NCBI RefSeq assembly: GCF_003704095.1
Contig: NW_020844174.1
Location: 62,001 to 126,000, forward strand
Length of the DNA stretch: 64,000 bases
From: Pocillopora damicornis
Taxonomy: Eukaryota
Direction of reading: 5' to 3'
Part shown: positions 13,801 to 35,700 of the stretch, one piece after another
How the letters are laid out: each line of letters begins with the position of its first letter
Numbering within the stretch: position 1 is the first letter of the stretch
Program-made: the position numbers and the translations under genes
The notes under the pieces: generated by a model
The model's database searches: none
What the model saw: only the letters and a program-made list of their open reading frames with translations
What the model was told of the DNA's origin: nothing

Positions 13801-16800
13801 TCCAATGACGAGGTAGATTTGTGTAAGTTAATTTTGGACGATCTCACAACACAGGCTGTAGACATAGCTCATCAGAAAAATTCCCAGATGAAAGAGAATA
13901 GTAGTAAAAGCGTTACGGATCGTGTTGCGTGCTGCCAGTCGTGCGTTGCGTTGCAAAAATCTTGCGACGTGTCGTGTGATAACTCTTTTTGTCAATCTGG
14001 ACGTAAATGCTGTGAGGAAAAATGCAGCAAAACTCTCTCAAATGACAATTCCTGTTCTGTGGAGCAAACTTTGGGTAAGCACTCAGTCGCTAATCATCGA
14101 GATATTCTGGAAATAAATCTTCCCTCCTCTGACCATAGTGTCTGCAACGAAGACAATGACAGTAGGCCATCATATGCTCCAGATGTCGCTGAAAAGTCGG
14201 GTCCGACCGATTTAAACCTCAGCAAAGAAAACAGCTCGATAAGTGATTTAGTCAAGACCCCGATAATATGCGATTCGTCTCCAATTCGTAATCTTAACAA
14301 AGGAGCTGAGAAATTTTTGGATAAGTCGTTCGCATGCTTGGATACCAGTACTGCTAAAGATACACGAGATTCGCGGGCCTGTGTGGAGAACAATGCGTCT
14401 CAACATCCTAATTCAGTTAATAACGATGTGGTGTCGGACGGACCCACTGTGGCGTTCGAAGGAATTCATTCTGTACCCCCCATCGACATAGTTGAACCTG
14501 ATTCTGGGATTTATATCGCTAATGGCCTGGAGGGAACATACTTCGCTGATGGCACTGACTTGCCACCGATTGACTCTGCTCTTGAAGAGGTGGAAGATGA
14601 GGAATCGTCTGATTGGTTTGAACCGCCCTTGGGTGACGCGCCCTCCCCTACAGATAGGGAAAGGGAAGAGTTACTGCCGTACGAAGAAGGAGATGAAATG
14701 AATCAAGTGAGTGCTTTAGGATTTTTTTTTCTCACCATTTTGCACTTCTTTTTATTTTTAAAATAACAAAATTACAACACACGAATGAGCATAAAATAAC
14801 TTACAACATCCGAAGTGAAAAGTACTGGAAAACGACAAAGCGAAATAAACGAGGAAACTTACAAGACGGATGTGACCAAAAACCCAAAAGACATAAAAAT
14901 GAAACCCGAAGCAACTAGACAATATGTTCCGCAAACTAGGAGAGACAACTAACGAAATAAATCACGCACGAACAGAATATGTACAATATGCGAATAAATA
15001 TAACAAGTACAAAACTGATAACTAATAAAGGAAACTAATGAAGACGAAAACTAAACACCTAACACGAAACTATGAGACAGAAATACATTCTTGCGCCTAC
15101 AGTTTCCAAAGATTCATAAAGGACCCACTACTCAGATTCATTATAGGCGTGATTCTTTGGTCAACTATTAGATCGCATGATCGCATGATCGCGCGTTACT
15201 GACTAGCAGCTCATTTGAACGCGCATGTGTATTTATGTTCATTCGTCATCGACCCGTTCATGTCCCTGTGTACACATACACTCATGTATCGCTAATAAGC
15301 CCTTATGAGCGCTCGCGCGCACACGTCCGATTTTTTTTCGTCACTGACCAGCTCAAATCAACGCGCACCAATGCGCGCTTGCACTCACAAGTGTGTGCGC
15401 GCACCCGCACTCAGTAGTCACTCACCAGCTCCCAGTATCGCGTGGGCACACGATCATTAATTTACCTCTGGCCGGGTAACACCTCGCTTCTACATTCGTC
15501 TTTACCCGTCACTGATCAGTTCACCTCACAGCGTGTGCACCCGCATTTGCACGTTACTGAACAACTCTCATGATCACGTGGGCACATGTTCATTCTATCG
15601 TCATTGACAGCTCACATATACGCGCGCGTGCATTGGCATTCACACGTCACTAACCGCTATACGTTAAAGTGCGTGCACCCGTATTCATTTATCACAAAGT
15701 AGTTCTCATAAACGCGTGCAGACCAACGTCCTCAAAGGCGCTTCCAACTCTCAACCTGCGCACACACATTACGTTCTCGTAGAGAAAAGTAGTTATTTAC
15801 GCATACGATTTTAAATATTGGTCTGTTTCCAGATTTGCTGCGAGCCGTCCTAAGTTGTGTTTAGGGCAGCGTATCAAGGACATCAAGAAACTTTGGAAAG
15901 CTATTAGAGGATTGACCAAGAGGAATACACCATGTCTTAACGGTTTTCCATGCTTTGATTTGATAGGTTGAAGGCTTAACTCATGTCAACCTGTATGTAC
16001 AAGCCCACTCTAAAGTTGTCCTCATTCTCCTGGCCGAGGAAGGTTTGAACAATGACTGTAATAGCATCAAGGCTTTGGTAAGGATGTAGATAAACCACAC
16101 CATTCTATTTGTTTGTCGCCAAAGTCGTTGGAATCGCTGTGTTAATATAACTTAATCAGTACTTTGACTGTTTTACAGTGGGAAACATCACTGAATCAAC
16201 TTGGTGAACTGGAGTTCTTGGTCAAAGAATCTTTGGGTGATGAATCAGTTCCTGTAAGTAAAGATCAAAACACACATAGTTCAAACCGTAGATCTTAATT
16301 ACTCGAGCCCTAAGGTGCACTTTTGTTTAATTACCTTTAAAGGTACTTAGACGCCAAAATGTAAGTTATTCTATGAATTTGGAATTAATTTTGCTCCTTG
16401 CAGCTTAGCTAAAAGTAAAAATCTATATATGCTGTCAAGGTAACAACCTCTGCCTGATACGTTTGGGTATTCTCATTTGCTGTTTGCTGGATAATGTATG
16501 AATACTATAGGAAGAAGTTTCACGTTAATTACTTCTGGGTCGTAAAGGGTTATTGTAGAATTATGAAAAGACATGGTTGAAGTTTCTAATGTTATGTCAT
16601 TATATACAGGTACAGTCTGATGAATATAGTTTCCTTTTGTATGACAGCTTTGAGAGAAACATGAAAGGTAATGAACAGAAAACGTGTCACGGAAATGAGA
16701 AGCTGCACGTTTCTAATTTTATACATGTTTATCGCTCGAGACATTTCAAGAACTGTATCACAACTCTTCAAAACGTAGAGATCAAACTCGCATTGTAATC

Positions 16801-18500: not shown

Positions 18501-19530
18501 ACAGTATATTGGTAGTTTTAACCGATTTAATATTGTAAATAGATAGATTGGGACGCTTTGTTTGACCTGAAGATTTTTTACCGAGTTTAAATAAAGATAC
18601 TACCTCTACTACTTGAAATTTTCAACTCTGTAACTCTTAGAGAGGGATTATTGGAGGCTGGAAATTTGTCTGGAATTACGCTGGCCCTGAATGAGCTCAT
18701 CTATTTTACCGATACATGTATATCGATCTCTGGGTGAGAGTGAGCTAAATAAAACTTAGCTTTATTACTTTATCGACAACCCTAAGGATCACTTTCGTGG
18801 ACCTTTTGGTCACAACAGATGAAATCGAAATGAAGGAAACAGGAATAATTTTTAATTAGGTAAGCTGATAAATAAACACGCACCAAAATATTTTGTGAAC
18901 GAACTAATCAGGGAAAGAAATGTGGGCATGAGATTTTTATTGAATTTGTAATTATCTGAAAGGAATCAGTATGCAGTTTTCTTAGCTTTGTCCATTCGTC
19001 TCGTAGAATAATTCAGTTTGGACACAACATTCTCTATTATGATAACAGTGTAGGAAACATTTGTAACAAAACTCAGCAGAGAGTCAGTGAAAATTCGGGA
19101 AAAAAGTGTGTACGTCTTTTTAATGATCACATAATGCCATGATTGACCGTTTTAACTGAGGTACTCTTGATTTTACTGATTGACGCGATTAATATATCAG
19201 GATCTCGATAAACAGGGAAGAAAAAGAATCTATCATAGAGTGGTTCGCCAGAGGCGTCATATATTCATTACCTTAAGATCCTTGCCAACAATAAAGCTTA
19301 GGGCGATATTACAACATTCTTGCCCATCTCCGTCTGTTGCCAAGATCTAAAAGGTTTTAAAGCAGGACCCCTTCTCCCCTGTAACACTTGGGAATTCTTT
19401 GTTCAGGGTTACCTTTATCCAACGTCCCGAAAGCTGTTTTATTTCTTCAAATGATGTGTAATACAAGTTCTGTTTGGTAATTGCATGCCTGTTTAGAAAA
19501 TACGTACGGAAAGCACAGATCTCTTCTTAT

Positions 19531-20896
19531 TGCCTGATTTCATGGCGCGCGGGAGACTGGCACTACCGGATTTTTGCGGACTNNNNNNNNNNNNNNNNNN
19601 NNNNNNNNNNNNNNNNNNNNNNNNNNNNNNNNNNNNNNNNNNNNNNNNNNNNNNNNNNNNNNNNNNNNNNNNNNNNNNNNNNTCACCTTATCACATCAGG
19701 TATGTTGTCACCTTTGAGGATCACTATGACCATGCTACTCCTGTCGGACCTGGCGTGACCCACAAATTTTATAGATTAAAGTAGAATAAAATTTAACATA
19801 TAGCCTNNNNNNNNNNNNNNNNNNNNNNNNNNNNNNNNNNNNNNNNNNNNNNNNNNNNNNNNNNNNNNNNNNNNNNNNNNNNNNNNNNNNNNNNNNNNNN
19901 NNNNNNNNNNNNNNNNNNNNNNNNNNNNNNNNNNNNNNNNNNNNNNNNNNNNNNNNNNNNNNNNNNNNNNNNNNNNNNNNNNNNNNNNNNNNNNNNNNNN
20001 NNNNNNNNNNNNNNNNNNNNNNNNNNNNNNNNNNNNNNNNNNNNNNNNNNNNNNNNNNNNNNNNNNNNNNNNNNNNNNNNNNNNNNNNNNNNNNNNNNNN
20101 NNNNNNNNNNNNNNNNNNNNNNNNNNNNNNNNNNNNNNNNNNNNNNNNNNNNNNNNNNNNNNNNNNNNNNNNNNNNNNNNNNNNNNNNNNNNNNNNNNNN
20201 NNNNNNNNNNNNNNNNNNNNNNNNNNNNNNNNNNNNNNNNNNNNNNNNNNNNNNNNNNNNNNNNNNNNNNNNNNNNNNNNNNNNNNNNNNNNNNNNNNNN
20301 NNNNNNNNNNNNNNNNNNNNNNNNNNNNNNNNNNNNNNNNNNNNNNNNNNNNNNNNNNNNNNNNNNNNNNNNNNNNNNNNNNNNNNNNNNNNNNNNNNNN
20401 NNNNNNNNNNNNNNNNNNNNNNNNNNNNNNNNNNNNNNNNNNNNNNNNNNNNNNNNNNNNNNNNNNNNNNNNNNNNNNNNNNNNNNNNNNNNNNNNNNNN
20501 NNNNNNNNNNNNNNNNNNNNNNNNNNGGGAAATCTGCTGAACTATTCCAGAAGAAAGTACTTCGCATTAGTCAAACTTGTAAATTCTCCACCTCACTTGA
20601 ACCCTCGGAAGTTCCTCCTCCATCGGCAAATTGGAAAATAATAGGAAGAAATGAAGNNNNNNNNNNNNNNNNNNNNNNNNNNNNNNNNNNCAGGAAGTAT
20701 TTCCCGTCCTGTAACCATAATGTTTGTTGGTAATACACCTACCCAAGCATATTGTCCTTGTGCAGTGGGGAAAAGTGGATTGTGCTGTCATGCAATCGCC
20801 TTGCTGATGCAGTTGAATTATTTTAGAGAACATAAGAAGCTGTTTCTTCATATGACTTGCACAGAAAAATTACAAAAATGGCACCTGAAAGGACCT
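19531..20896 (+). mobile_element. Partial ISL2EU-type element copy (TIR plus YqaJ-gene fragments including a SWIM finger), mostly gap
   Basis: TIR tgcctgatttcatggcgcgcgggagactggcactaccggatttttgcggact at 19531-19582, preceded by AT. 20527-20656 is the reverse complement of about 24545-24674. 20691-20896 encodes AYCPCAVGKSGLCCHAIALL...CTEKLQKWH (SWIM CxCx(n)CxH). Confidence 0.75.
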
Positions 20897-20996: not shown

Positions 20997-21074
20997 TTAA
21001 CTGTTTGCTGGATATTGTATGGATATTGTAGAGAGAAGTTACATGTTAATCACCTCTTGGAGTTAAAGGGTTAA
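20997..21074. mobile_element. piggyBac-like MITE end (family also at about 16420-16552, 34060-34192, 35017-35144)
   Basis: Shared ...tgtttgctggata.tgtatg.at..t.taggagaagtt.ca.gttaat.ac.tct.ggagt.aaagggttaa, ending in GGG+TTAA. Confidence 0.55.
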
Positions 21075-21198: not shown

Positions 21199-22419
21199 TT
21201 ATTTGATGTAAAGAGCATGGCTCACTAAAAATCCCTTTGGCTGACCATTAAACACAGATAGTTTAGAGTTAATTTGTCTTTGTTCTTTAAGTCCATCATA
21301 GATGAGCCAGGTATTGGCATAGCTAAACATACAGATGTAATGACCACCACCCCATAATGTTGCACTGTGTAGATTCAGTAGCTTCCCATTCAAGGTTATG
21401 GTGCTTGGTAGATCTTTAGTTCTAAGATGAGTTCTTCTACTCAATAAATCAACAGAAAAATGAAAAATTTCTTGAAACAGGAAAATGAACATGGTGTACT
21501 AGTCCTAAATACAGTTTGGGTACCGTTGCCATTCAATGTCACATCTGGCTGACTTGGAATACTAACTGGGGGTTTGCTTTGAAATTTCCTTTGACAACAA
21601 TTCATTCTTGGATGAAGCTTTGACAAAGGTACTGTAGTTATCATTACATCCAAGTGCAATGCCATGTGATATTTGAGTCTTAATCATTGATGGACAGGTG
21701 CTCAGGTTATAGGATGAGGTAATTGTAGTTGCTATAAAGGGCTGAAAAAGGCTTATAAAGTTACCTGATTCATTACCATAAAAGTCAATAATTCCATGCT
21801 TTATCACAGGTGTTTAAGGCAGGGTGACCTTTGCATCTCCATACCTCTTGAGGTCTACTGAGAATAATGCTGACTTTATAATGTTTCCAACATTATATAA
21901 CTCATGAAGGACTATTCTCCATTATTTTACCAATGCTTGCAATATCATCAACCAATTGTCTATTAGACAGGTATTTGCTAATTGAATTCCAGAACTTGTT
22001 GTACCACCCCAGGGTATGACTACTAAATCAACAGGAGAATGATTATCACCATGTATTGTTGATCTGCTATTGTTGCCATGGGTTACTGATTGGTCACCAG
22101 TGTCTTTGGTAGCCATAGGGCTGCTGTTGTCATGGGCATTTGATGAATCATTAGTGTCTTTGGTAGCTACTGCATTATCATCGTCCATAGTAGCTACTGG
22201 GCTACTGTCATGGCTAACTGATGGGTCCTCAGTGTCTTTGTTAGCTACAGGGCCATCAATGTCCATGGTAGCTACTGCACTAATGTTGTCATAGGATGGT
22301 GAAAAAAAGTCACTTGGCATCACAAAGGGTGGAAGATTCCTTGGAATGCGCATTTCAAATGTTTCTGGTGCTATTACTCTCTTCCAAAAACCTGATAATG
22401 TTCTTAAAAAGTCAGCAAT
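21199..22419 (-). pseudogene. 3' part of a disrupted YqaJ-exonuclease / USP-like cysteine protease fusion gene (host of the inner transposon)
   Basis: Reads IADFLRTLSGFWKRVIAPETFEMRIPRNLPPF (YqaJ C-terminus), then a D/S/T repeat linker, then PWGG...LANTCLIDNWLMIL (Cys box), then DLPSTITLNG...LHSATLWGGGHYICMFSYANTWLIYDG...SHALYIK (His/Asp box). In-frame stops at 21922-21924 and 21814-21816; frameshifts around 21450-21620. Confidence 0.7.
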
Positions 22420-22498
22420 TGCCTGATTTCATGGCGCGCGGGAGACTGGCACTACCGGATTTTTGCGGACTTTGTACATGTACTATTCCTGATTCAAA

Positions 22499-23815
22499 AT
22501 GGCGGTCGATAAGACCTCTTGGCATTGGAGTTGTGCCAGTCGATGCTGTAAAGCGTCCTGGAAAACGGAAGCCTTAACCTAAACTAAAGTTGCTTCAGCT
22601 AGTAAACCTGTTGTCGAAGCTTATTTGTTTGTCCTCGGGAAAACCATAAACGAAGTCAATTTTAAGAGACAAGTGATTTGTACACAACATTGGCCCAAAG
22701 GCGTACGAAAAAACCTGGAAGATCCGCCTTCAATTAAATACACAAATGTGCAAGGAAAAGAGACTAAAGAAGGTCGTGAACATTGGAACTGTGCTGCAGC
22801 TCTGTGTACAAACTCCTGGCGAACTAAACTCGAGGGATTACAATACTATCGTTTAAGTGACTTCGCTCAATGCAAAGACAAACAACATGCTTATAATAAA
22901 GTATTGATGAACAAAGCAGTTGACTTCAAACGCGATTTTATATGTTCAGTACACTGGTCAAAAGGATTTAGAAACAACTTAGATGATCTCCCAGATAGAG
23001 CGTGCCACCCGGACTACGTGAATAAACAAACAACAAAGAAAGTGACACCACAAAGTAAAATTGCTTCCGCAAAACGTTCTCTGAGTACGACTAAGCAAAC
23101 AAACACCAAGAGAAGGAAACTCATACGTTCATCCTGTTCACTTGACTTTAATTCAGATGAATCTAAATTTGACATAATGCAAAAAGAATTACAAGAGCTC
23201 AAAGAAAAGCTAGAGAACAAAACCGAAGAGGCAAACAGACTGTCTCTGCAAGTGAAAGACCTCACTGAAAAAAATGACAGTTTAAGCAAGCAGATTGCAC
23301 AATTTAAAGGGAAGATGAAAGACTTGACATTTTCATATGAATGTCTCAAGTTACGACCCAAAAGATTTTTTTACATGAGTGGATTAACTGTTGATGATTT
23401 TAATTGTGTTTTGGAATGCATCAAGCCATATATTTCTGTAATAATTTATCCTGATTGCAAAACTAACCAAGATGGGCAAAGAAAACTCACAAAGAGAACT
23501 GAATTGTTGTGTTATTTTACAATATGCCGTCATACATTGCACCTTGGAGTCATGGCTTTCCTCACCAACACAAGTGATTCAACTATATCCCATATTTTTT
23601 CTGCATCGTTAATATTTCTTTCAACTCTTTTTGACTCTATTGACCTCAGTCCATACCCGGGGGAAGTCATTTCATTGTTACCCAAAGAGTTTTGGTCTTC
23701 TGGTTTTCAGGACACTGTACTATTTGGGGACTGTACAGAAAACTGGATCTCATCACCTGAAAACTATGATGTGAGTAGTGCAACATTTAGTTGGAAGGAG
23801 GAAGACCTACTGTGA
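22499..23815 (+). pseudogene. Truncated transposase: two THAP-like C2CH fingers, coiled coil, HTH and start of a Harbinger-type DDE domain
   Basis: ATG at 22499, MAVDKTSWHWSCASRCCKASW, premature TAA at 22580-22582, same frame continuing ...VICTQHW. Second finger HWNCAAALCTNSW...FICSVHW; FFYMSGL; FGDCTENWI (first catalytic Asp motif). Ends abruptly after SSATFS, so the rest of the DDE triad is missing. Confidence 0.82.
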
Positions 23816-23891
23816 TAGCAATGCTTGTATTGAGTACTGTCACTCGATAAAGTATTGACTTTCAGCATTTATGGTTAACTTGGGAGATTAA

Positions 23892-24866
23892 TTATTGATA
23901 TGTTGGTGAAATATTCAATAATGTAATAATCCATTGTCTTACATATGGCAATGGTTTCAATGCAATCTCCATTTTCTTGTTTTTTTCCTCTTCGTTTAGT
24001 TTTTCTAGCTGTGTGTTATTGGGAAGGGATCGGGTTTTTATTTCAACCAAAAACTGCTGCCACCCAGTGCTCACTCCATCAGGACTGGCTCCAAATCTCC
24101 TATCAGAAGGATGTTTGAAGTACCCACACTGAGAGACACTCATTTTACTGTCATTTTGAAATTGTTGTATTGCATTTTGTTCCTGTTGCTTGCCTCTAAT
24201 AAAATTTGGTAATTTACTCCTTCTTGGATTTAAAACATGTTCATCAATTCTGTTCTTTATTGCAAACCATCCATTGTCAAACTCTTTCACATCATTAAAT
24301 CCTAGGAGAGATGGAACCTTGCTTGCAGTGATAGTCCCAACTCTTAGTGCAGGATTTGTGTAGGATTTGAGGATGTTTGCTTTTACAAATGAGCGTTTAG
24401 AATTGCTTTCCATCATTTTCACAGACGTTATTCGTCTCGAAGAAAACATAAGGTGCGCCTTTCGGTACTGACCTTTTTTACCTGCGTATTTGGCTTTTTG
24501 GTAGTCTCGAAAAGTATTTTCTTTAACCACAGGGACGTTAGGATCTTCATTTCTTCCTATTATTTTCCAATTTGCCGATGGAGGAGGAACTTCCGAGGCT
24601 TCAAGTGAGGTGGAGAATTTATAAGTTTGACTAATGCGAAGTACTTTCTTCTGGAATAGTTCAGCAGATTTCCCTAGAGGAGCCAACCTTTCAACAAGTT
24701 CTTGCTTTTCCCCGGTGACCTTTAGCCTCAATTCCTTACAATATTGCTTCAGACTTTCTTTGCCAAGTGATGGCAAGTTTTCTGGTGATATATCACATTT
24801 GATTGCCTCAAAAGTAGACAATTTTGATTCACATTTTAGATGAGTTTTTGGATTGCTTGCAGTCAT
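23892..24866 (-). pseudogene. SAP domain plus YqaJ (lambda-exonuclease-like) protein of the ISL2EU element, internally deleted
   Basis: LGKESLKQYCKELRLKVTGEKQELVERL (SAP); ITASKV, GASPDG and LVEIK (PD-(D/E)xK YqaJ motifs). Lacks the SWIM segment seen in the copy at 20691-20896 and the QxQxQ motif. Confidence 0.8.
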
Positions 24867-24947
24867 TTTGAATCTGGAATATAGTACAAGTACAAAGTCC
24901 GCAAAAATCCGGTAGTGCCAGTCTCCCGAGCGCCATGAAATCAGGCA

Positions 24948-25144
24948 ATTAAAGGCTCATCTCTGTAGATCCTTTCAACTTTGCATACAGCACAAAATCA
25001 CAGAAGGTTCTTTCAGTGACCATTAACTGGGTTTGTATTTGTATTCTTTTGTATTTTGTATTTGTATTCTTTTAAGTTCACATTTACTACCTTTAACAGA
25101 AAATCATTGTCTTTCGAGAGTGTCTTTACCAACTAGTATTCCAC
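24948..25144 (-). pseudogene. Upstream part of the host YqaJ gene interrupted by the inner transposon
   Basis: Reverse strand reads QIQTQLMVTERTFCDFVLYAK, then (frameshift) VERIYRDEPLI: YqaJ C-terminal motifs that join in frame to 22419 and below. Bounded by the gap at 25145. Confidence 0.75.
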
Positions 25145-25244
25145 NNNNNNNNNNNNNNNNNNNNNNNNNNNNNNNNNNNNNNNNNNNNNNNNNNNNNNNN
25201 NNNNNNNNNNNNNNNNNNNNNNNNNNNNNNNNNNNNNNNNNNNN

Positions 25245-25653
25245 TCGTCTTACATGTGGCAATGGTTTCAATGCAATCTCCATTTTCTTGTTTTTTTCAT
25301 CTTTGTTTAGTTTTTCTAGCTGGGTGTTATTGGGAAGGGATTGGGTTTTTATTTCAACCAAAAACTGCTGCCACCCAGTGCTCACTCCATCAGGACTGGC
25401 TCCAAATCTGCTATCAGAAGGATGTTTGAAGTACCCACACTGAGAGACACCCATTTTACTGTCATTTTGAAATTGTTGTATTGCATTTTGTTCCTGTTGC
25501 TTGCCTCTAATAAAATTTGGTAGACAATTTTGATTCACATTTTAGATGAGTTTTTGGATTGCTTGCAGCCATTTTGAATCTGGAATATAGTACAAGTACA
25601 AAGTCCGCAAAAATCCGGTAGTGCCAGTCTCCCGCGCGCTATGAAATCAGGCA
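25245..25653 (-). mobile_element. Second, further-deleted copy of the YqaJ end of the ISL2EU element with TIR
   Basis: 25245-25521 matches about 23935-24211, then jumps at GTA microhomology to about 24813-24947. TIR ends at 25653, followed by AT. Several substitutions versus the first copy. Confidence 0.8.
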
Positions 25654-26130
25654 ATTTTAGCAGTTATAACTTCTATTGACTAAGAGGGTTAGTTTTCAGC
25701 GACTCAAACAGCTGGAACTCATTGTATTGTTTAGAGGTCTCATTTTTTTCTTAGCATGATCAAGCATTTAAAATGTGCACGAGAGAATCTTTGTATCAGT
25801 TTTCCAACATCCTTATTCAAAGTACCTCACTCTCGATCCTTCGATCACTTGGTTCAGACGTTTTCGCGTGTTTTTCTTTTCGGCTCATTAACTTGTTAAG
25901 TGGCGTTGTTATTGATGCGTAACTCCCTCTTGACGACCGCAAATAAAGCGTGGAAGTCAAGGATTACCAATATTATCAGCGCAAACTCTAAACACAGGTA
26001 TCTTGCGCCAAGAAAATATTTTTTCGCTTGATTTTTACTTGGCTCATACAACAGCCTAACTGGGAAAAAGAGATTTTTTCATGATCTAAAGCGACACTTG
26101 AGTATTAGACTGTAATTTGTTTAGTGATAT

Positions 26131-26506
26131 CACAGGCGGTCCAAGCTCACGTCTCGAGAAAAAGTCAGCGATTAATTTACGAAAGCGTCACGCGTTCTGT
26201 GAAAAGACGAAGACAGAGGAAAGACAGTAATAACAGTGATGGAAAAGCAAGCTTGAAACGGCAGAAATCGCCGGAAACTACGACGGAAACACAAGATGTG
26301 AGTAAGTTTTATTGATTTTCAATGTTCATATTTCGAAATGTTTATTGTTGTAAATCAACCATATTACGTTCCCTATACTATTCCTTATAACGTCTTCAAA
26401 TTTTCAAAGGTTCTTCTCGTAACTGAACACCGAGTCACACAACGCGTGACGCTTTCATGAATTAATCGTTGGCTTTTTCTCGAGACGTGAGCTTGGGCCG
26501 CCTGTG
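26131..26506. mobile_element. MITE, 376 bp, about 66-bp imperfect TIRs, CA..TG ends, 7-bp TSD (P-element-like)
   Basis: GTGATAT|cacaggcggtccaagctcacgtctcgagaaaaag...ctttttctcgagacgtgagcttgggccgcctgtg|GTGATAT. Confidence 0.85.
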
Positions 26507-26876
26507 GTGATATCAGTAAAATTCTCACCCAGGTGCTGAATATACAATTTCATTGAAGGTACGGGATGAGTTAACTCTGGTCCTCAAAAGATCCCTATGC
26601 TTGACGGGATGTTAGATTCATTCAAATATCTTTAATTCTAATATGTTCCGTCCAAATGCTTATTTTGCCTGGTTACTCGTTCTTTCTGATTTCCTCGTTC
26701 AACATAGAAAAAGATACATCTTCCCGCATCACTAGAGATGATTAGCCTGAGTCATTGTTCTCCCCTGTATAAATTTCCATTATCAAGTAATTGTTTGTTG
26801 TTCATGGACCTCACATTTGACTTCTTCATTCATCATAGACTAACTACCCGCCCTCTCGTCAGTTAGATCCTTCGAC

Positions 26877-32700: not shown

Positions 32701-35700
32701 CTTATGGCCTTATTGTGTAATTGCATTGCTGGTTGCAAAACAAATTCTGCAGATATCTCTCTAATGGATAAAAAATCAAGTTTATGAGCATTCTACATCT
32801 TGAAAGAGCAGATCAAATGTCGCAATTTTCAAGTATTTACAACTTATTAAATAAATGTATACAAAAGTAGTGACTTTTATGTTGCATTTTAGACGTATCA
32901 TGCATGAGGTATTTGGAGCTGTTAAGTTCATGCATGATCAGGACATTGTTCACAGAGATTTAAAGGTGAGTTAAAATGCCTTTGGGAATTACACCTTTGT
33001 TTACTTGTGGCTGATCCATGTGCACACCAAGTTGTGTTGGATCAGCATTGTGAACACATTACACTTTATCTTATTTGAAGAAGGTTATCATATGTACATG
33101 TACATTCTTTTTCCTTGCACACAGAACAAAGAGTGCATTTGTAACATGGATGACATATACATGTATTTGTATTTTCATAAGCTTTCCTAAAGTAGATTTG
33201 GGAGTAACCTAAACTTTATTAAACCAAGTTGAATACCAGTAAAAACAAAATTCTGATGTTCATTTCCTTTTTATGTGTTCCTGTGTACTTGAAAGCAAAT
33301 TTTTTTGCAATGTTGTTTTACAGCCTGAAAACATTCTCCTTGATGAAGACTACAGAATAAAAATATCAGATTTTGGCTTTGCAGTTAAGCTGAAAGAAGG
33401 GGAAAAGCTCAGAGGTAGTTTAAAATGAAGTTTACTAACAGAAACAGCTCAAACTCTATATATTTGTTACAAGGGTGCCCCCTCTTGTCATTTTATGACT
33501 TTGTGAACACATCCCCTCTTGACTGCCTTTGAAAGCATACAGTTTACAGCCTGTTCTTCTGTTGATACCAGACGAAAATGACAAATCGGTTCATGTGCTT
33601 GAATAGTGAAAATACACTTTTACTGTAAGCATCTGTGTGAAGGTAACATTTACTTGTCAAAGTTCCAAGTTACATGTAGGAAAGTTGTTTTAGCCATAAC
33701 TCATCCACCCCTTGCAATACAAGTACACGTTTAGGCTCCTATACATGTATTTTGACTCCATGTGTGCAGAATTTATGGATTTAAACGCATGTGAATAACT
33801 CAGTACAGAGATATAATCTTTTATTTCATTGGCATTTGCATATAGTATTTTTTTTATATAATATATTTTTTTTCCTAGAGCTGTGTGGTACACCTGGCTA
33901 TTTGTCACCTGAAGCACTACAGTGCTCTATGTTTGGGGATGCTCCAGGCTATTCAAAGGAAGTTGACATGTGAGATAACATTCTCCTTAAATTTTTAATT
34001 ACACTAACATCACATTTTTTACATACACGCATACATCAGCCTGCATAATGGTGATGGATAGAGACAAACTTATCAGCAAGAAAATTGGATGATACCTTGA
34101 TATTACACCAAACTCTTATGATTGCCTTACAAGGAAATGTAAGACAGCTAGTTAGGAGAATTACAAATCCAATCTTTAAAGTTACAGGGTTGAGAGACTT
34201 CTGTGTACATTTTTAAAGCTAGGGTATTTTGAAGACTTTTATACCCTGCTCTATAATATTTACCAGCATGAAAAATAAGTAGAAATAAAAACTCTCATGT
34301 AAATATGTTTTGTCATATTGTCACTTGGTTGAGCAACGACAAGCTGTCTGTAATAGCTACCGTTGTTTGTCTTTTTTAATAACTGATTGCAAAATCATAA
34401 GCTCTTCCCGAGCAGATTCGTCCCACACATCGGCAGGCTATTACTCTCCAGTCACGTAATTTCCTGTTCATGCACACTTTTCCCTCCCCCACACCATTAA
34501 GGAAAGAATAGTATCAAAAATTAACAAAGTTAGCAATACATGCACTCTACAACAATCTCATTATTGCTACTTAAAAGAGGCTTGAAAATTCTCAAGTCTT
34601 AATGAAACAACCTAAAATTTGTTTGCCATTTTTAAATGATGAAGAGAATTCTATTCTAAACTACTGAGAGAGGTTTGCCCCTCGAGTACCATCTGCTGTC
34701 ATATTCGAAAATGTCTTGCATCACTGTTGTGTTTTCTTCTTTGCATGGAACAAGAGTGTCCTCATATATCTGTTAGCAACTGAAATGTTTTTAACTTCCT
34801 TTTTTTGTTTTTATTTTCCAGGTGGGCATGTGGAGTGATCATGTACACTTTGTAAGTATTTTTAAGAAAAATTATTAATTTTGATTTGTCATATAGTTCT
34901 GTATCTTTACAAATAATATGTATCATCTTTTATATGTCACTGAAATGTCAAAATAGCAAATCAAATTAAATTTTGACAGGAAATACATGTACATGTAGGT
35001 TGAAAAATTAGACTCAGCCCCTCAACTTCTAGATGTGATTAACATGTCACTTCTCCTTGTAATATCCACACATTATCCAGTAAACAAGTCATGAGAATAC
35101 TCAAACTTGATATCTACAATCAGATCCTGGGAGTTAAAGGGTTACATGAACAAAGGTGATGCTCATTGTGACATCACTTCATTTTGACAGGCTTGTGGGC
35201 TGCCCTCCCTTCTGGCATCGCCGACAAGTTACCATGCTGCGGTCAATAATGGAGGGAAGATACCATTTTCACAGTCCAGAATGGGACGACATTTCTGAGT
35301 CAGCCAAAAATTTGGTGAGTTCCAGTGTACCAGAGAAAATATAATTTAAAGGAGCTGTGTCACGTTATTAATTTGGGTAATTCTGGGCGTGAAATTGCGC
35401 CTAATACAGGCGCCAATGCAACTAAATTTTCACTTTGGCGACCAAATCCTGAAAATTTTCGCTGAAGAATGCTTCATCATATCCTTACTTAGAGATATAG
35501 AGAATTAAAAAGATCAGAAAAAGTAAATCCGCGGTAAACTTACTCGTTAAGGTCGTTTCCAAAACGCAGCACATGCATCTCGATCGATAACTAGACGTCA
35601 TCTTGGATTTAGGTGAACGTTGTATGTCATCCATTCTAGTGTCCACGTTGTAGCATGTTAAAGATCTTTTTCCTGATTTAATTTTGAAGGGTCTATCTAG

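Follow-up and report, generated by a model that had tools for sequence, protein, structure and literature searches.

The question raised by this locus of Pocillopora damicornis is what kind of genetic element would join a YqaJ-type nuclease to something resembling a USP-type deubiquitinase, and what such a pairing might do. Within the window, that is the whole 64,000-nucleotide stretch of DNA that was analysed, the locus is a decayed cut-and-paste DNA transposon of the ISL2EU type (PIF/Harbinger-IS5 related), with one element lying inside another. The broken pieces of the window were searched one by one, and structures were predicted for intact relatives as they occur in nature. The features, in window coordinates, are as follows.

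25570-25653, minus strand: 5' terminal inverted repeat of the outer element, 94-98% identical to the other termini by self-BLAST
25245-25572, minus strand: 5' part of the outer accessory gene, with the protein start and the first half of YqaJ, running into an N gap
24950-25136, minus strand: C-terminal part of the outer YqaJ, QIQTQLMVTERTFCDFV ... VERIYRDEPL, found by tblastn of P0071 and P0038 in frames -3, -2 and -1
22420-24947, minus strand: nested sibling element, internally deleted, in the YqaJ coding sequence, with terminal inverted repeats (TIRs) at 22420-22503 and 24864-24947
23892-24866, minus strand: inner-copy remnant of the accessory gene, SAP and the N-terminal two thirds of YqaJ, by Pfam
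22625-23815, plus strand: inner-copy transposase remnant, convergent with the nuclease gene and colinear by BLASTP with the L019 transposase
22303-22419, minus strand: last YqaJ helix, IADFLRTLSGFWKRVIAPE...MRIPRNLPPFVMP, aligned to P0038, P0046 and P0071, the frame continuing across the excised insertion
22033-22302, minus strand: low-complexity, repeat-rich linker (ATKDT/ATMD), of varying length and sequence among relatives
21202-22032, minus strand: USP-fold cysteine-protease-like domain, a pseudogene, its fold assigned from models of intact relatives
21975-21967, 21780-21769, 21351-21337 and 21300-21292, minus strand: motifs NTC, YGNE, GGGHY and YDG of that domain
19531-20896, plus strand: a further element terminus (TIR 19531-19582, AT at 19529-19530) and accessory-gene pieces, between N gaps

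The nested insertion measures 2,528 bp, carries inverted terminal repeats of about 84-87 bp that are 94% alike at its two ends, and is flanked by AT duplicates at 22418-22419 and 24948-24949, such that excising it with one AT restores the reading frame. The intact relative P0038 aligns straight over this join, with residues 403-414 matching 24979-24944 and residues 412-789 resuming at 22422. From 22419 to 21925 the frame is free of stops as it passes from the last YqaJ helix through the ATKDT/ATMD linker into the Cys box, where TGT at 21967-21969 encodes the Cys of LANTCLIDN; farther along lie CAT at 21340-21342 (the His of GGGHY), GAT at 21295-21297 (the Asp of W..IYDG) and the ORF terminus ALYIK, with its stop at 21199-21201. 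A preliminary description made from the DNA alone had named the three codons, the insertion, its AT duplication, the in-frame join and two TAA stops, all of which we could confirm to the base. It had also called this copy a pseudogene, as the two stops and the frameshifts bear out, and its account of the damage stands as far as two stops and a frameshift are concerned; the Cys and His boxes, however, in fact share frame -2, with the in-frame TAA codons at 21922-21924 and 21814-21816 between them, and the frameshift is an out-and-back one, 21617-21456 reading in frame -3. The first zinc cysteine has been lost (Cys to Tyr), as has the WHC motif, and the C-terminal YqaJ piece at 25136-24947 has two frameshifts. 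The window copy is dead: a sibling element hit YqaJ, and the protease-like part later gained stops, a double frameshift and the loss of a zinc ligand.

Two splicing interpretations were considered and rejected. The breaks are not introns, as intact relatives are intron-free there and both stops lie in frame where the relatives align. The inner-copy 'KPLPYV/gtaag', a candidate splice site, falls in 23816-23935, the breakpoint region of the internal deletion, and the simpler reading is that it is this breakpoint.

The outer element's terminus (...GAAATCAGGCA) ends at 25653, beside an AT at 25654-25655, and its gene opens with an ATG at 25572-25570, within the terminal inverted repeat. The 5' part of this gene is 97.5-97.8% identical to the inner-copy segments 23936-24211 and 24814-24950 and is missing about 600 bp, covering the SAP region, that are still present in the inner copy; an N gap at 25145-25244 conceals part of the outer copy's YqaJ region, and its transposase half is not visible in the window, through either gaps or loss. 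The accessory-gene remnant of the inner copy matches Pfam YqaJ (PF09588, E 1.1e-10) and SAP (E 8.6e-6) and has the PD...EIK motif (SPDG, VEIK). The inner transposase remnant, of which relatives are also present elsewhere in the P. damicornis genome, comprises the N-terminal 396 aa only, with THAP-like CxxHW repeats, a coiled coil and an HTH, as far as the first catalytic Asp ('DCTE'). The plus-strand pieces, with a SAP region at 20527-20656 and a CxC...CxH zinc-finger-like region at 20691-20896, represent a third copy or, alternatively, parts of the outer copy that were misplaced in the scaffold.

As to the type of element, all four element termini are AT-flanked, the nested insertion lying within TTAATT. 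On two contigs, L019 and L020, a 1,006-aa fused ORF converges on the gene of a 516-aa THAP/HTH_Tnp_4/DDE_Tnp_4 transposase, and the P0046 locus is laid out alike; the full transposase of related elements matches DDE_Tnp_4 at E 2.6e-43, its matches to HTH_Tnp_4 and THAP being weak, and a TIR search at L019 gave only a 20-nt subterminal inverted repeat. The TIRs of ISL2EU elements measure 6-259 bp and usually start with GG, whereas those in the window begin with TG (TGCC). A further difference is that the coral ORF2 additionally has a USP-fold domain at its C terminus, besides SAP and a zinc-finger-like motif. Taken together, the AT duplication at A|AT|T, the TIRs, the YqaJ ORF and the THAP/HTH/DDE_Tnp_4 partner place the element in the ISL2EU type, as had been supposed from the DNA alone. 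On insertion, ISL2EU elements duplicate the 2-bp AT of an A|AT|T target (PMC4482050, PMC4122938), and the likeness to this group (IS4EU; PHIS superfamily) extends over the AT duplication, the presence of TIRs and the pairing of a THAP/HTH/DDE transposase with a YqaJ gene (PMC4482050, PMC4122938, PMC9179366).

In intact relatives the accessory protein, the product of the element's second gene and about 950-1,010 aa long, begins at its N terminus with SAP and a zinc-finger-like CxxC...CxH region; next come a nuclease of the YqaJ/lambda-exonuclease type, a linker that is disordered and variable, and at the C terminus a USP-fold domain of about 290 residues. That nuclease and protease-like module belong to one ORF, as proposed, is borne out by uninterrupted single ORFs of 943-1,010 aa holding YqaJ and the full C-terminal domain (P0071 and P0073, 1,006 aa; P0125, 1,010; P0127, 988; P0143, 972; P0129, 955; P0141, 953; P0132 and P0128, 943), with Acropora, Porites and Desmophyllum as the named sources. 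The nuclease half is recognisable from its family profile, which at E 3e-19 matches PDB entry 3syy, the LHK exonuclease, in an alignment that includes the PD...EIK motif (SPDG...EIK). It shares the PD...(D/E)xK motif with phage and viral YqaJ-lambda exonucleases (LHK-Exo 3syy, mimivirus R354), but the phage enzymes stand alone and are partnered by a single-strand annealing protein, whereas the coral nuclease sits within a multidomain eukaryotic transposon protein. The P. damicornis genome holds a second copy (contig C3719), 41-58% identical, and no others; both copies are broken. Because the order of YqaJ end, linker, Cys box and His box recurs in the C3719 copy and in dozens of proteins elsewhere, the arrangement in the window is not due to chance. 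A second subfamily of the USP-like domain lacks YqaJ; in each of two assemblies it has the same kinase gene as its neighbour.

The C-terminal domain had been put forward as a USP/C19-like module. The AlphaFold model of P0040 (pLDDT 94.4, pTM 0.88) gave 385 Foldseek matches in the PDB at E<=1e-3, headed by USP14, USP7 and USP15, and an unbiased structural scan of 48,161 chains returned USP35 as the best match (Z 15.8, 235 residues, 3.8 A, covering model residues 1-293), followed at Z about 14 by USP30, USP14, USP18 and USP12; every one of the 35 best rows had the USP fold. Also among the matches were Pan2 (Z 13.2), Sad1/USP39 (Z 11.3), coronavirus PLpro (Z about 11) and the FMDV leader protease (Z 8.9). 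An earlier, weaker second AlphaFold model gave the same ranking, and the matches in a viral structure library were giant-virus UCH/USP proteins. These models show the coral C-terminal domain to have the thumb-palm-fingers USP fold, and the positions of Cys24 (starting helix 24-38), His247 (just before strand 248-254) and Asp262 (after strand 257-261) in the P0040 model are compatible with a papain-like layout. The fold match to USPs (MEROPS C19/Pfam UCH; USP35, USP30, USP14, USP7, USP12) takes in the whole domain (Z 13-16, about 235 aligned residues), and both have a helix-N-terminal Cys in N-T-C, a G-H-Y box, the Asp of W..YD and, within the fingers, a zinc site of four cysteines, which are kept in 35/35, 35/35, 33/35 and 35/35 relatives.

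Sequence comparison gave a different answer for C19 membership. The coral domain is 8-13% identical to USPs, compact (about 290 residues) and fused to a nuclease within a transposon, and Pfam UCH (PF00443) and UCH_1 (PF13423) had no match at E<=10 among 22 intact members. Nor did any other Pfam family match the C-terminal domain, either in those 22 relatives or in the broken pieces from the window. When the entire genome was scanned with UCH in six frames, the window locus was not picked up, and PDB sequences searched with two family profiles yielded YqaJ-type exonucleases only and no USP. Aligning the domain profile with one host USP exon (L049) by hhalign gave a probability of 0.1, with no sequence-level bridge. 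The fold part of the proposal is therefore upheld by the two models, Foldseek and the structural scan, while assignment to C19 by sequence is not, the domain being too diverged for the Pfam UCH models.

Selection was compared across the parts of the fused protein in two independent pairs, P0073 versus P0071 and P0038 versus P0141, for which dN/dS was 0.22 and 0.215 in the USP-like part, 0.34 and 0.18 in YqaJ, and 2.1 and 0.99 in the linker. Judged by these coding-sequence comparisons, the USP-like domain is intact and under purifying selection in related corals. This bears on whether the module might be a pseudo-enzyme that binds ubiquitin, a ubiquitin-like modifier (Ubl) or another partner and brings the nuclease to modified chromatin while cleaving nothing, a reading to which the pseudo-USPs Pan2 and Sad1/USP39, as good structural matches, and the absent Pfam UCH match lend some support. 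Known pseudo-USPs have lost their catalytic residues. In the coral family, by contrast, the Cys, His and Asp picked out in the preliminary description proved to be nearly invariant (NTC Cys 26/26, GHY His 34/35, YD Asp 34/34) at an overall identity of 28-50%, and this conservation, with purifying selection on the domain, makes a pseudo-enzyme unlikely.

We also considered whether the module could be a processing protease of the PLpro/Lpro type that cuts its own fusion protein or the transposase, for example freeing the nuclease, instead of targeting ubiquitin conjugates of the host. A long disordered linker does separate the two enzymes, and the fold is common to coronavirus PLpro and the FMDV leader protease, but canonical USPs at Z 13-16 match better than the viral processing proteases at Z 9-11, and the linkers of relatives have no common LxGG-like site, the sole motif common to them being a short acidic (Y/H)T.(D/E)E(L/I)(D/E)(V/I)A. 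A linker dN/dS of about 1-2 also speaks against a conserved cleavage site, and we hold self-processing to be quite improbable.

That the fused ORFs are domesticated host genes, with the window only an old relic, seems very improbable to us. The Acropora RefSeq models, the presence of only two dead copies in the P. damicornis genome and the YqaJ-less subfamily beside its kinase gene would fit such a history, whereas the fused gene in the window lies inside TIR-bounded, AT-flanked elements, one inserted in another, a convergent DDE_Tnp_4 transposase adjoins it at L019, L020 and the P0046 locus, and protein clusters hold 72-427 near-identical members each, as expected of multicopy elements. An accidental juxtaposition, in which a host USP-like exon fell beside a transposon fragment or the motifs arose by chance, could draw on the broken window copy and the assembly gaps around it but has practically nothing left to it, being refuted by uninterrupted fused ORFs on many independent contigs and in many species, the diverged second copy C3719, and a fold match that spans the entire domain.

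We thus favor, as likely, the reading in which a decayed ISL2EU element carries a SAP-zinc-finger-YqaJ-linker-USP-like protein whose USP-like module would strip ubiquitin or a Ubl during transposition. The transposase would cut and paste the element, the SAP and zinc-finger parts would bring the accessory protein to DNA, and at the donor or target site the YqaJ nuclease may process the DNA ends. The USP-like module tethered to it, putatively catalytic, would remove modifiers from nearby chromatin, repair factors or transposition proteins, by which repair may be steered or the machinery protected. The preliminary description had suggested that the module perhaps counters silencing or repair signalling based on ubiquitin/SUMO. 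Among USP-fold proteins, USPL1 is specific for SUMO and USP18 for ISG15. Since the USP-like domain is intact and under selection in related corals, ubiquitin-type signalling is probably involved in the element's movement. More tentatively, and as possible rather than probable, stony-coral ISL2EU elements may encode an active, new and highly diverged clade of USP-type deubiquitinases or de-UBLases, tethered to their recombination nuclease, that edits marks at the element's own break and manipulates host damage signalling, with the YqaJ-less branch perhaps joined to another, possibly RAG1/Transib-like, transposase or else domesticated. Candidate targets under this break-editing reading are histones, PCNA/FANCD2-like clamps and the transposase.

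Our literature search found no paper linking YqaJ or ISL2EU to a USP or deubiquitinase, in line with the earlier impression that the fusion is apparently undescribed. The nearest precedents are Ulp1 and OTU proteases in other transposons and a Trichomonas IS5-like transposase-C19 fusion. The Ulp1 (C48) and OTU proteases of Ginger1, MULE/KI-MULE and Helitron are likewise ubiquitin/SUMO-type cysteine isopeptidases within DNA-transposon proteins, and involvement of the ubiquitin/SUMO pathway in transposition or repair has been proposed for them (PMC2836005); they differ in having another protease fold, carried on a transposase/integrase or helicase, whereas the coral USP fold is carried on the accessory nuclease. 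The Trichomonas vaginalis protein XP_001314237.1, as summarised in PMC2836005 (citing Gladyshev & Arkhipova 2009), is a fusion of an IS5-like transposase (transposase_11) with Peptidase C19, and so resembles the coral protein in tying a C19/USP-type domain to a transposase of the IS5/PIF/ISL2EU group. By that summary's description it is set apart from the coral protein, with a CDD-recognisable C19 domain on the transposase itself and in a protist.

That mobile DNA interferes with ubiquitin/SUMO signalling has long been hinted at by the Ulp1 and OTU proteases found on transposons, and the coral elements add USP as a third major deubiquitinase fold, placed on the YqaJ nuclease, the least understood ISL2EU protein. 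Domain databases currently do not recognise this family of at least about 100 sequence clusters as proteases, and its members are consequently given as 'uncharacterized' in coral annotations; the Acropora RefSeq models of the fused ORFs, for instance, are named 'uncharacterized protein LOC...'. The pairing of YqaJ with a USP-like domain suggests a coupling of DNA-end processing with the removal of ubiquitin-type marks. If the break-editing reading is true, manipulation of host DNA-damage ubiquitin signalling would be an integral, element-encoded step of cut-and-paste transposition.

The accessory gene of the outer ISL2EU-type element is a decayed reading frame on the minus strand, and it lies among further element pieces, as follows.

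Element features in the window (window positions)
Between 25653 and 21199, minus strand: accessory gene of the outer copy; start ATG at 25572-25570, within the terminal inverted repeat
25136-24950, minus strand: YqaJ C-terminal segment of the outer copy, with 2 frameshifts
23892-24866, minus strand: accessory-gene ORF of the better-preserved sibling copy, covering the 5' two thirds of the nuclease gene
22625-23815, plus strand: transposase-gene remnant of the inner copy, first 396 codons, convergent with the nuclease gene
19531-20896, plus strand: extra element terminus and nuclease-gene pieces, AT-flanked at 19531, in opposite orientation to the main copy

The outer copy is broken by a 100-N gap (25145-25244), and a 2,528-bp insertion splits its YqaJ coding sequence at 24947/22420. 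The ends of this insertion are inverted repeats of ~84-87 bp that are 94% alike, and an AT lies on either side (22418-19 and 24948-49). The excision proposed in the preliminary description, 22420-24947 plus one AT, is correct because intact homologues align across the join without a break, such that residues 403-414 of the relative P0038 stop at 24944 and the alignment restarts at 22422 with residue 412. From 22419, 165 codons without a stop lead via the final helix of YqaJ and a linker of low complexity to the motif LANTCLIDN, and the catalytic codons fall exactly where they had been placed (Cys 21967-69, His 21340-42, Asp 21295-97). The damage described there, two TAA stops (21922-24 and 21814-16) and a frame shift, is also present, with the correction that the Cys and His boxes share one frame; 21617-21456 of the USP-like part is read in another frame before the original is restored. 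This copy has neither the first zinc cysteine nor the WHC motif.

The insertion itself is a sibling of the outer element that carries an internal deletion. Between them, the 5' part of the outer copy and the sibling ORF have a SAP motif (E 8.6e-6) and a nuclease domain of the YqaJ type (E 1.1e-10). The convergent gene at 22625-23815 is colinear with a THAP/HTH_Tnp_4/DDE_Tnp_4 transposase as far as the first catalytic Asp. The transposase half of the outer copy is not visible in the window, owing to assembly gaps or loss. The pieces at 19531-20896, lying between four N gaps, hold a short SAP region and a CxC...CxH (SWIM-like) zinc-finger region, and represent either a third element copy or misplaced scaffold pieces. 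This zinc-finger-like region goes unrecognized by Pfam, is absent from the inner copy and is present in the intact relatives P0038 and P0071. Two further repeats were seen nearby: a ~70-bp sequence (~81% identity), probably a small MITE/SINE-like repeat, found a short way past the stop codon of the dead gene (21001-21073) and at 16480-16552 and 35018-35086 in both orientations, and an ~85-bp inverted pair (88% identity; 26120-26202 and 26435-26520), ~230 bp apart, just past the outer element's end.

All termini in the window read AT|TGCCTGATTTC. Published descriptions characterise ISL2EU elements by TIRs, a target-site duplication of AT within A|AT|T, a transposase of the THAP/DDE type and a second ORF that encodes YqaJ (PMC4482050, PMC4122938, PMC9179366). 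Elsewhere, two contigs (L019 and L020) each hold a 1,006-aa fused ORF convergent with a 516-aa DDE_Tnp_4 transposase gene, and the locus of the relative P0046 presents a SAP+YqaJ ORF, a C-terminal-domain ORF and DDE_Tnp_4 ORFs in the same order. The fused protein is encoded within an ISL2EU element, adjoining the transposase, and with such neighbours the fused ORFs are less likely to be domesticated host genes. A pogo/Tc5-type transposase ORF (BrkDBD, HTH_Tnp_Tc5, DDE_1; L019:7062-8549, minus strand) directly adjoins the Acropora-type ISL2EU element, which therefore sits in a transposon cluster.

Searches for relatives revealed only 2 copies of the C-terminal domain in the 234-Mb genome, the second of which (contig C3719) is 41-58% identical, runs from the YqaJ end through the linker to the Cys and His boxes, and is also broken. 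With a 97-aa His-box piece as query, phmmer run exhaustively over 1.84 billion representatives recovered 35 proteins, and word-indexed searches with intact relatives and the family profile as queries recovered 19, 45 and 72. Many of these are fragments. Nine ORFs (P0071, P0073, P0125, P0127, P0128, P0129, P0132, P0141 and P0143), at 943-1,010 aa, run uninterrupted through YqaJ and the whole C-terminal domain, and a SAP match is present in seven of them. Members with a species name, none of them annotated beyond uncharacterised or hypothetical, are from Acropora millepora and A. digitifera, from Porites evermanni and from Desmophyllum pertusum; the taxonomic range of the fusion is drawn from these few named sequences, the others being from marine or coral metagenomes and assemblies. 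YqaJ proteins at greater distance (31-41% identity; those with a species name are from insects and one bacterium) are without the C-terminal domain.

Sequence searches with the C-terminal domain returned no Pfam family at E<=10 (22 members) and no USP among PDB sequences, and a six-frame UCH scan of the whole genome misses the locus. Structural comparison, in which every sequence modelled was a natural one, placed the domain in the USP fold. A first model (P0046, 22-sequence alignment; domain pLDDT ~75-90) matched USPs only, and a domain-only model (P0040, 35 sequences; pLDDT 94.4, pTM 0.88) gave 385 Foldseek matches against the PDB at E<=1e-3, with USP14, USP7 and USP15 at the top. A Foldseek-independent scan of 48,161 representative chains ranked USP35 first (Z 15.8, 235 aligned residues, 3.8 A), followed by USP30, USP14, USP18 and USP12 (Z ~14); its top 35 rows are all of USP fold, including SUMO-specific USPL1 and inactive Pan2 and Sad1, and after them come coronavirus PLpro (Z ~11) and FMDV Lpro (Z 8.9). 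Matches in the viral library were compact USPs of giant viruses. Among ESM Atlas look-alikes of P0040, the nearest clusters were basidiomycete proteins without a name and a cluster from chordates that bears the automatic name 'Chromosome 14 open reading frame 28' (0.95), above genuine UCH clusters at 0.90-0.92; going by this language-model score, the nearest clusters may represent additional USP-like proteins that have gone unrecognised.

In the model, the conserved Cys starts the central helix and the GHY His and YD Asp lie on neighbouring strands, a predicted papain-like arrangement. Across the family the Cys is kept in 26 of the 26 sequences covering the site, the His in 34/35 and the Asp in 34/34, and each of the four cysteines of the zinc site in 33-35 of 35. 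About 65 residues past the Cys comes a conserved YGNE.D(Y/F)F motif, at what we take, as a lead only, to be the position of the USPs' QQD-box. A single protein combines motifs for DNA binding, a nuclease of the lambda-exonuclease type and a module of USP fold whose catalytic signature is intact, and we hold these structural and architectural claims, taken together, with high confidence. With somewhat better than even confidence, the domain would be an active isopeptidase; a non-catalytic binding module, the condition of Pan2 and Sad1, is less likely.

Nei-Gojobori counting on two independent pairs of natural intact genes gave dN/dS values of 0.22 for the USP-like part, 0.34 for YqaJ and 2.1 for the linker between P0073 and P0071 (whole-gene dS 0.07), and of 0.215, 0.18 and 0.99, respectively, between P0038 and P0141 (whole-gene dS 0.51). 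The USP-like part is therefore as constrained as the nuclease. The linkers evolve neutrally and have no LxGG-like site, both of which argue against the less likely reading of the module as a PLpro-like processing protease.

A second branch of the domain (contigs L018, L030, L041 and L042; proteins P0027, P0115, P0173-P0176 and P0182), absent from this genome, is ~30% identical and keeps the catalytic motifs; it is preceded by an unrelated N-terminus of ~150 aa and not by YqaJ. Two assemblies place it ~3.5 kb upstream of a gene for a protein kinase. L030 and L041 hold an upstream exon-like ORF (...GHLT(V/I)EH.PML...SNQGFEA.HKLQRQLYSRATNH) with faint Pfam RAG1 matches (E 0.015 and 0.089) and a RAG1 match in the PDB at E 1.3; this branch may have a Transib/RAG1-like partner or be a domesticated gene.

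Transposon-borne Ub/Ubl proteases and ISL2EU elements with YqaJ are already known. The ISL2EU papers covered by our literature search describe ORF2 with a YqaJ domain alone and call its function unknown, and the search found no paper in which a USP or other deubiquitinase is paired with YqaJ or ISL2EU. The closest precedent is a Trichomonas vaginalis protein, noted in PMC2836005, with an IS5-like transposase and a recognisable Peptidase C19 domain. What appear to be undescribed are the addition of a USP-fold domain to the YqaJ accessory nuclease, the extreme distance of this domain from UCH models and, from few named sequences, its presence across both major stony-coral clades.

All major break-repair choices are under ubiquitin and SUMO control. 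In the fused protein, the nuclease would process the ends that transposition makes, and the tethered USP-like module would strip ubiquitin or a ubiquitin-like modifier at that site, a proposal like that made for the Ulp1/OTU domains of Ginger1, MULE and Helitron elements (PMC2836005). The candidate targets of this predicted de-modification would be chromatin, repair factors or transposition proteins.
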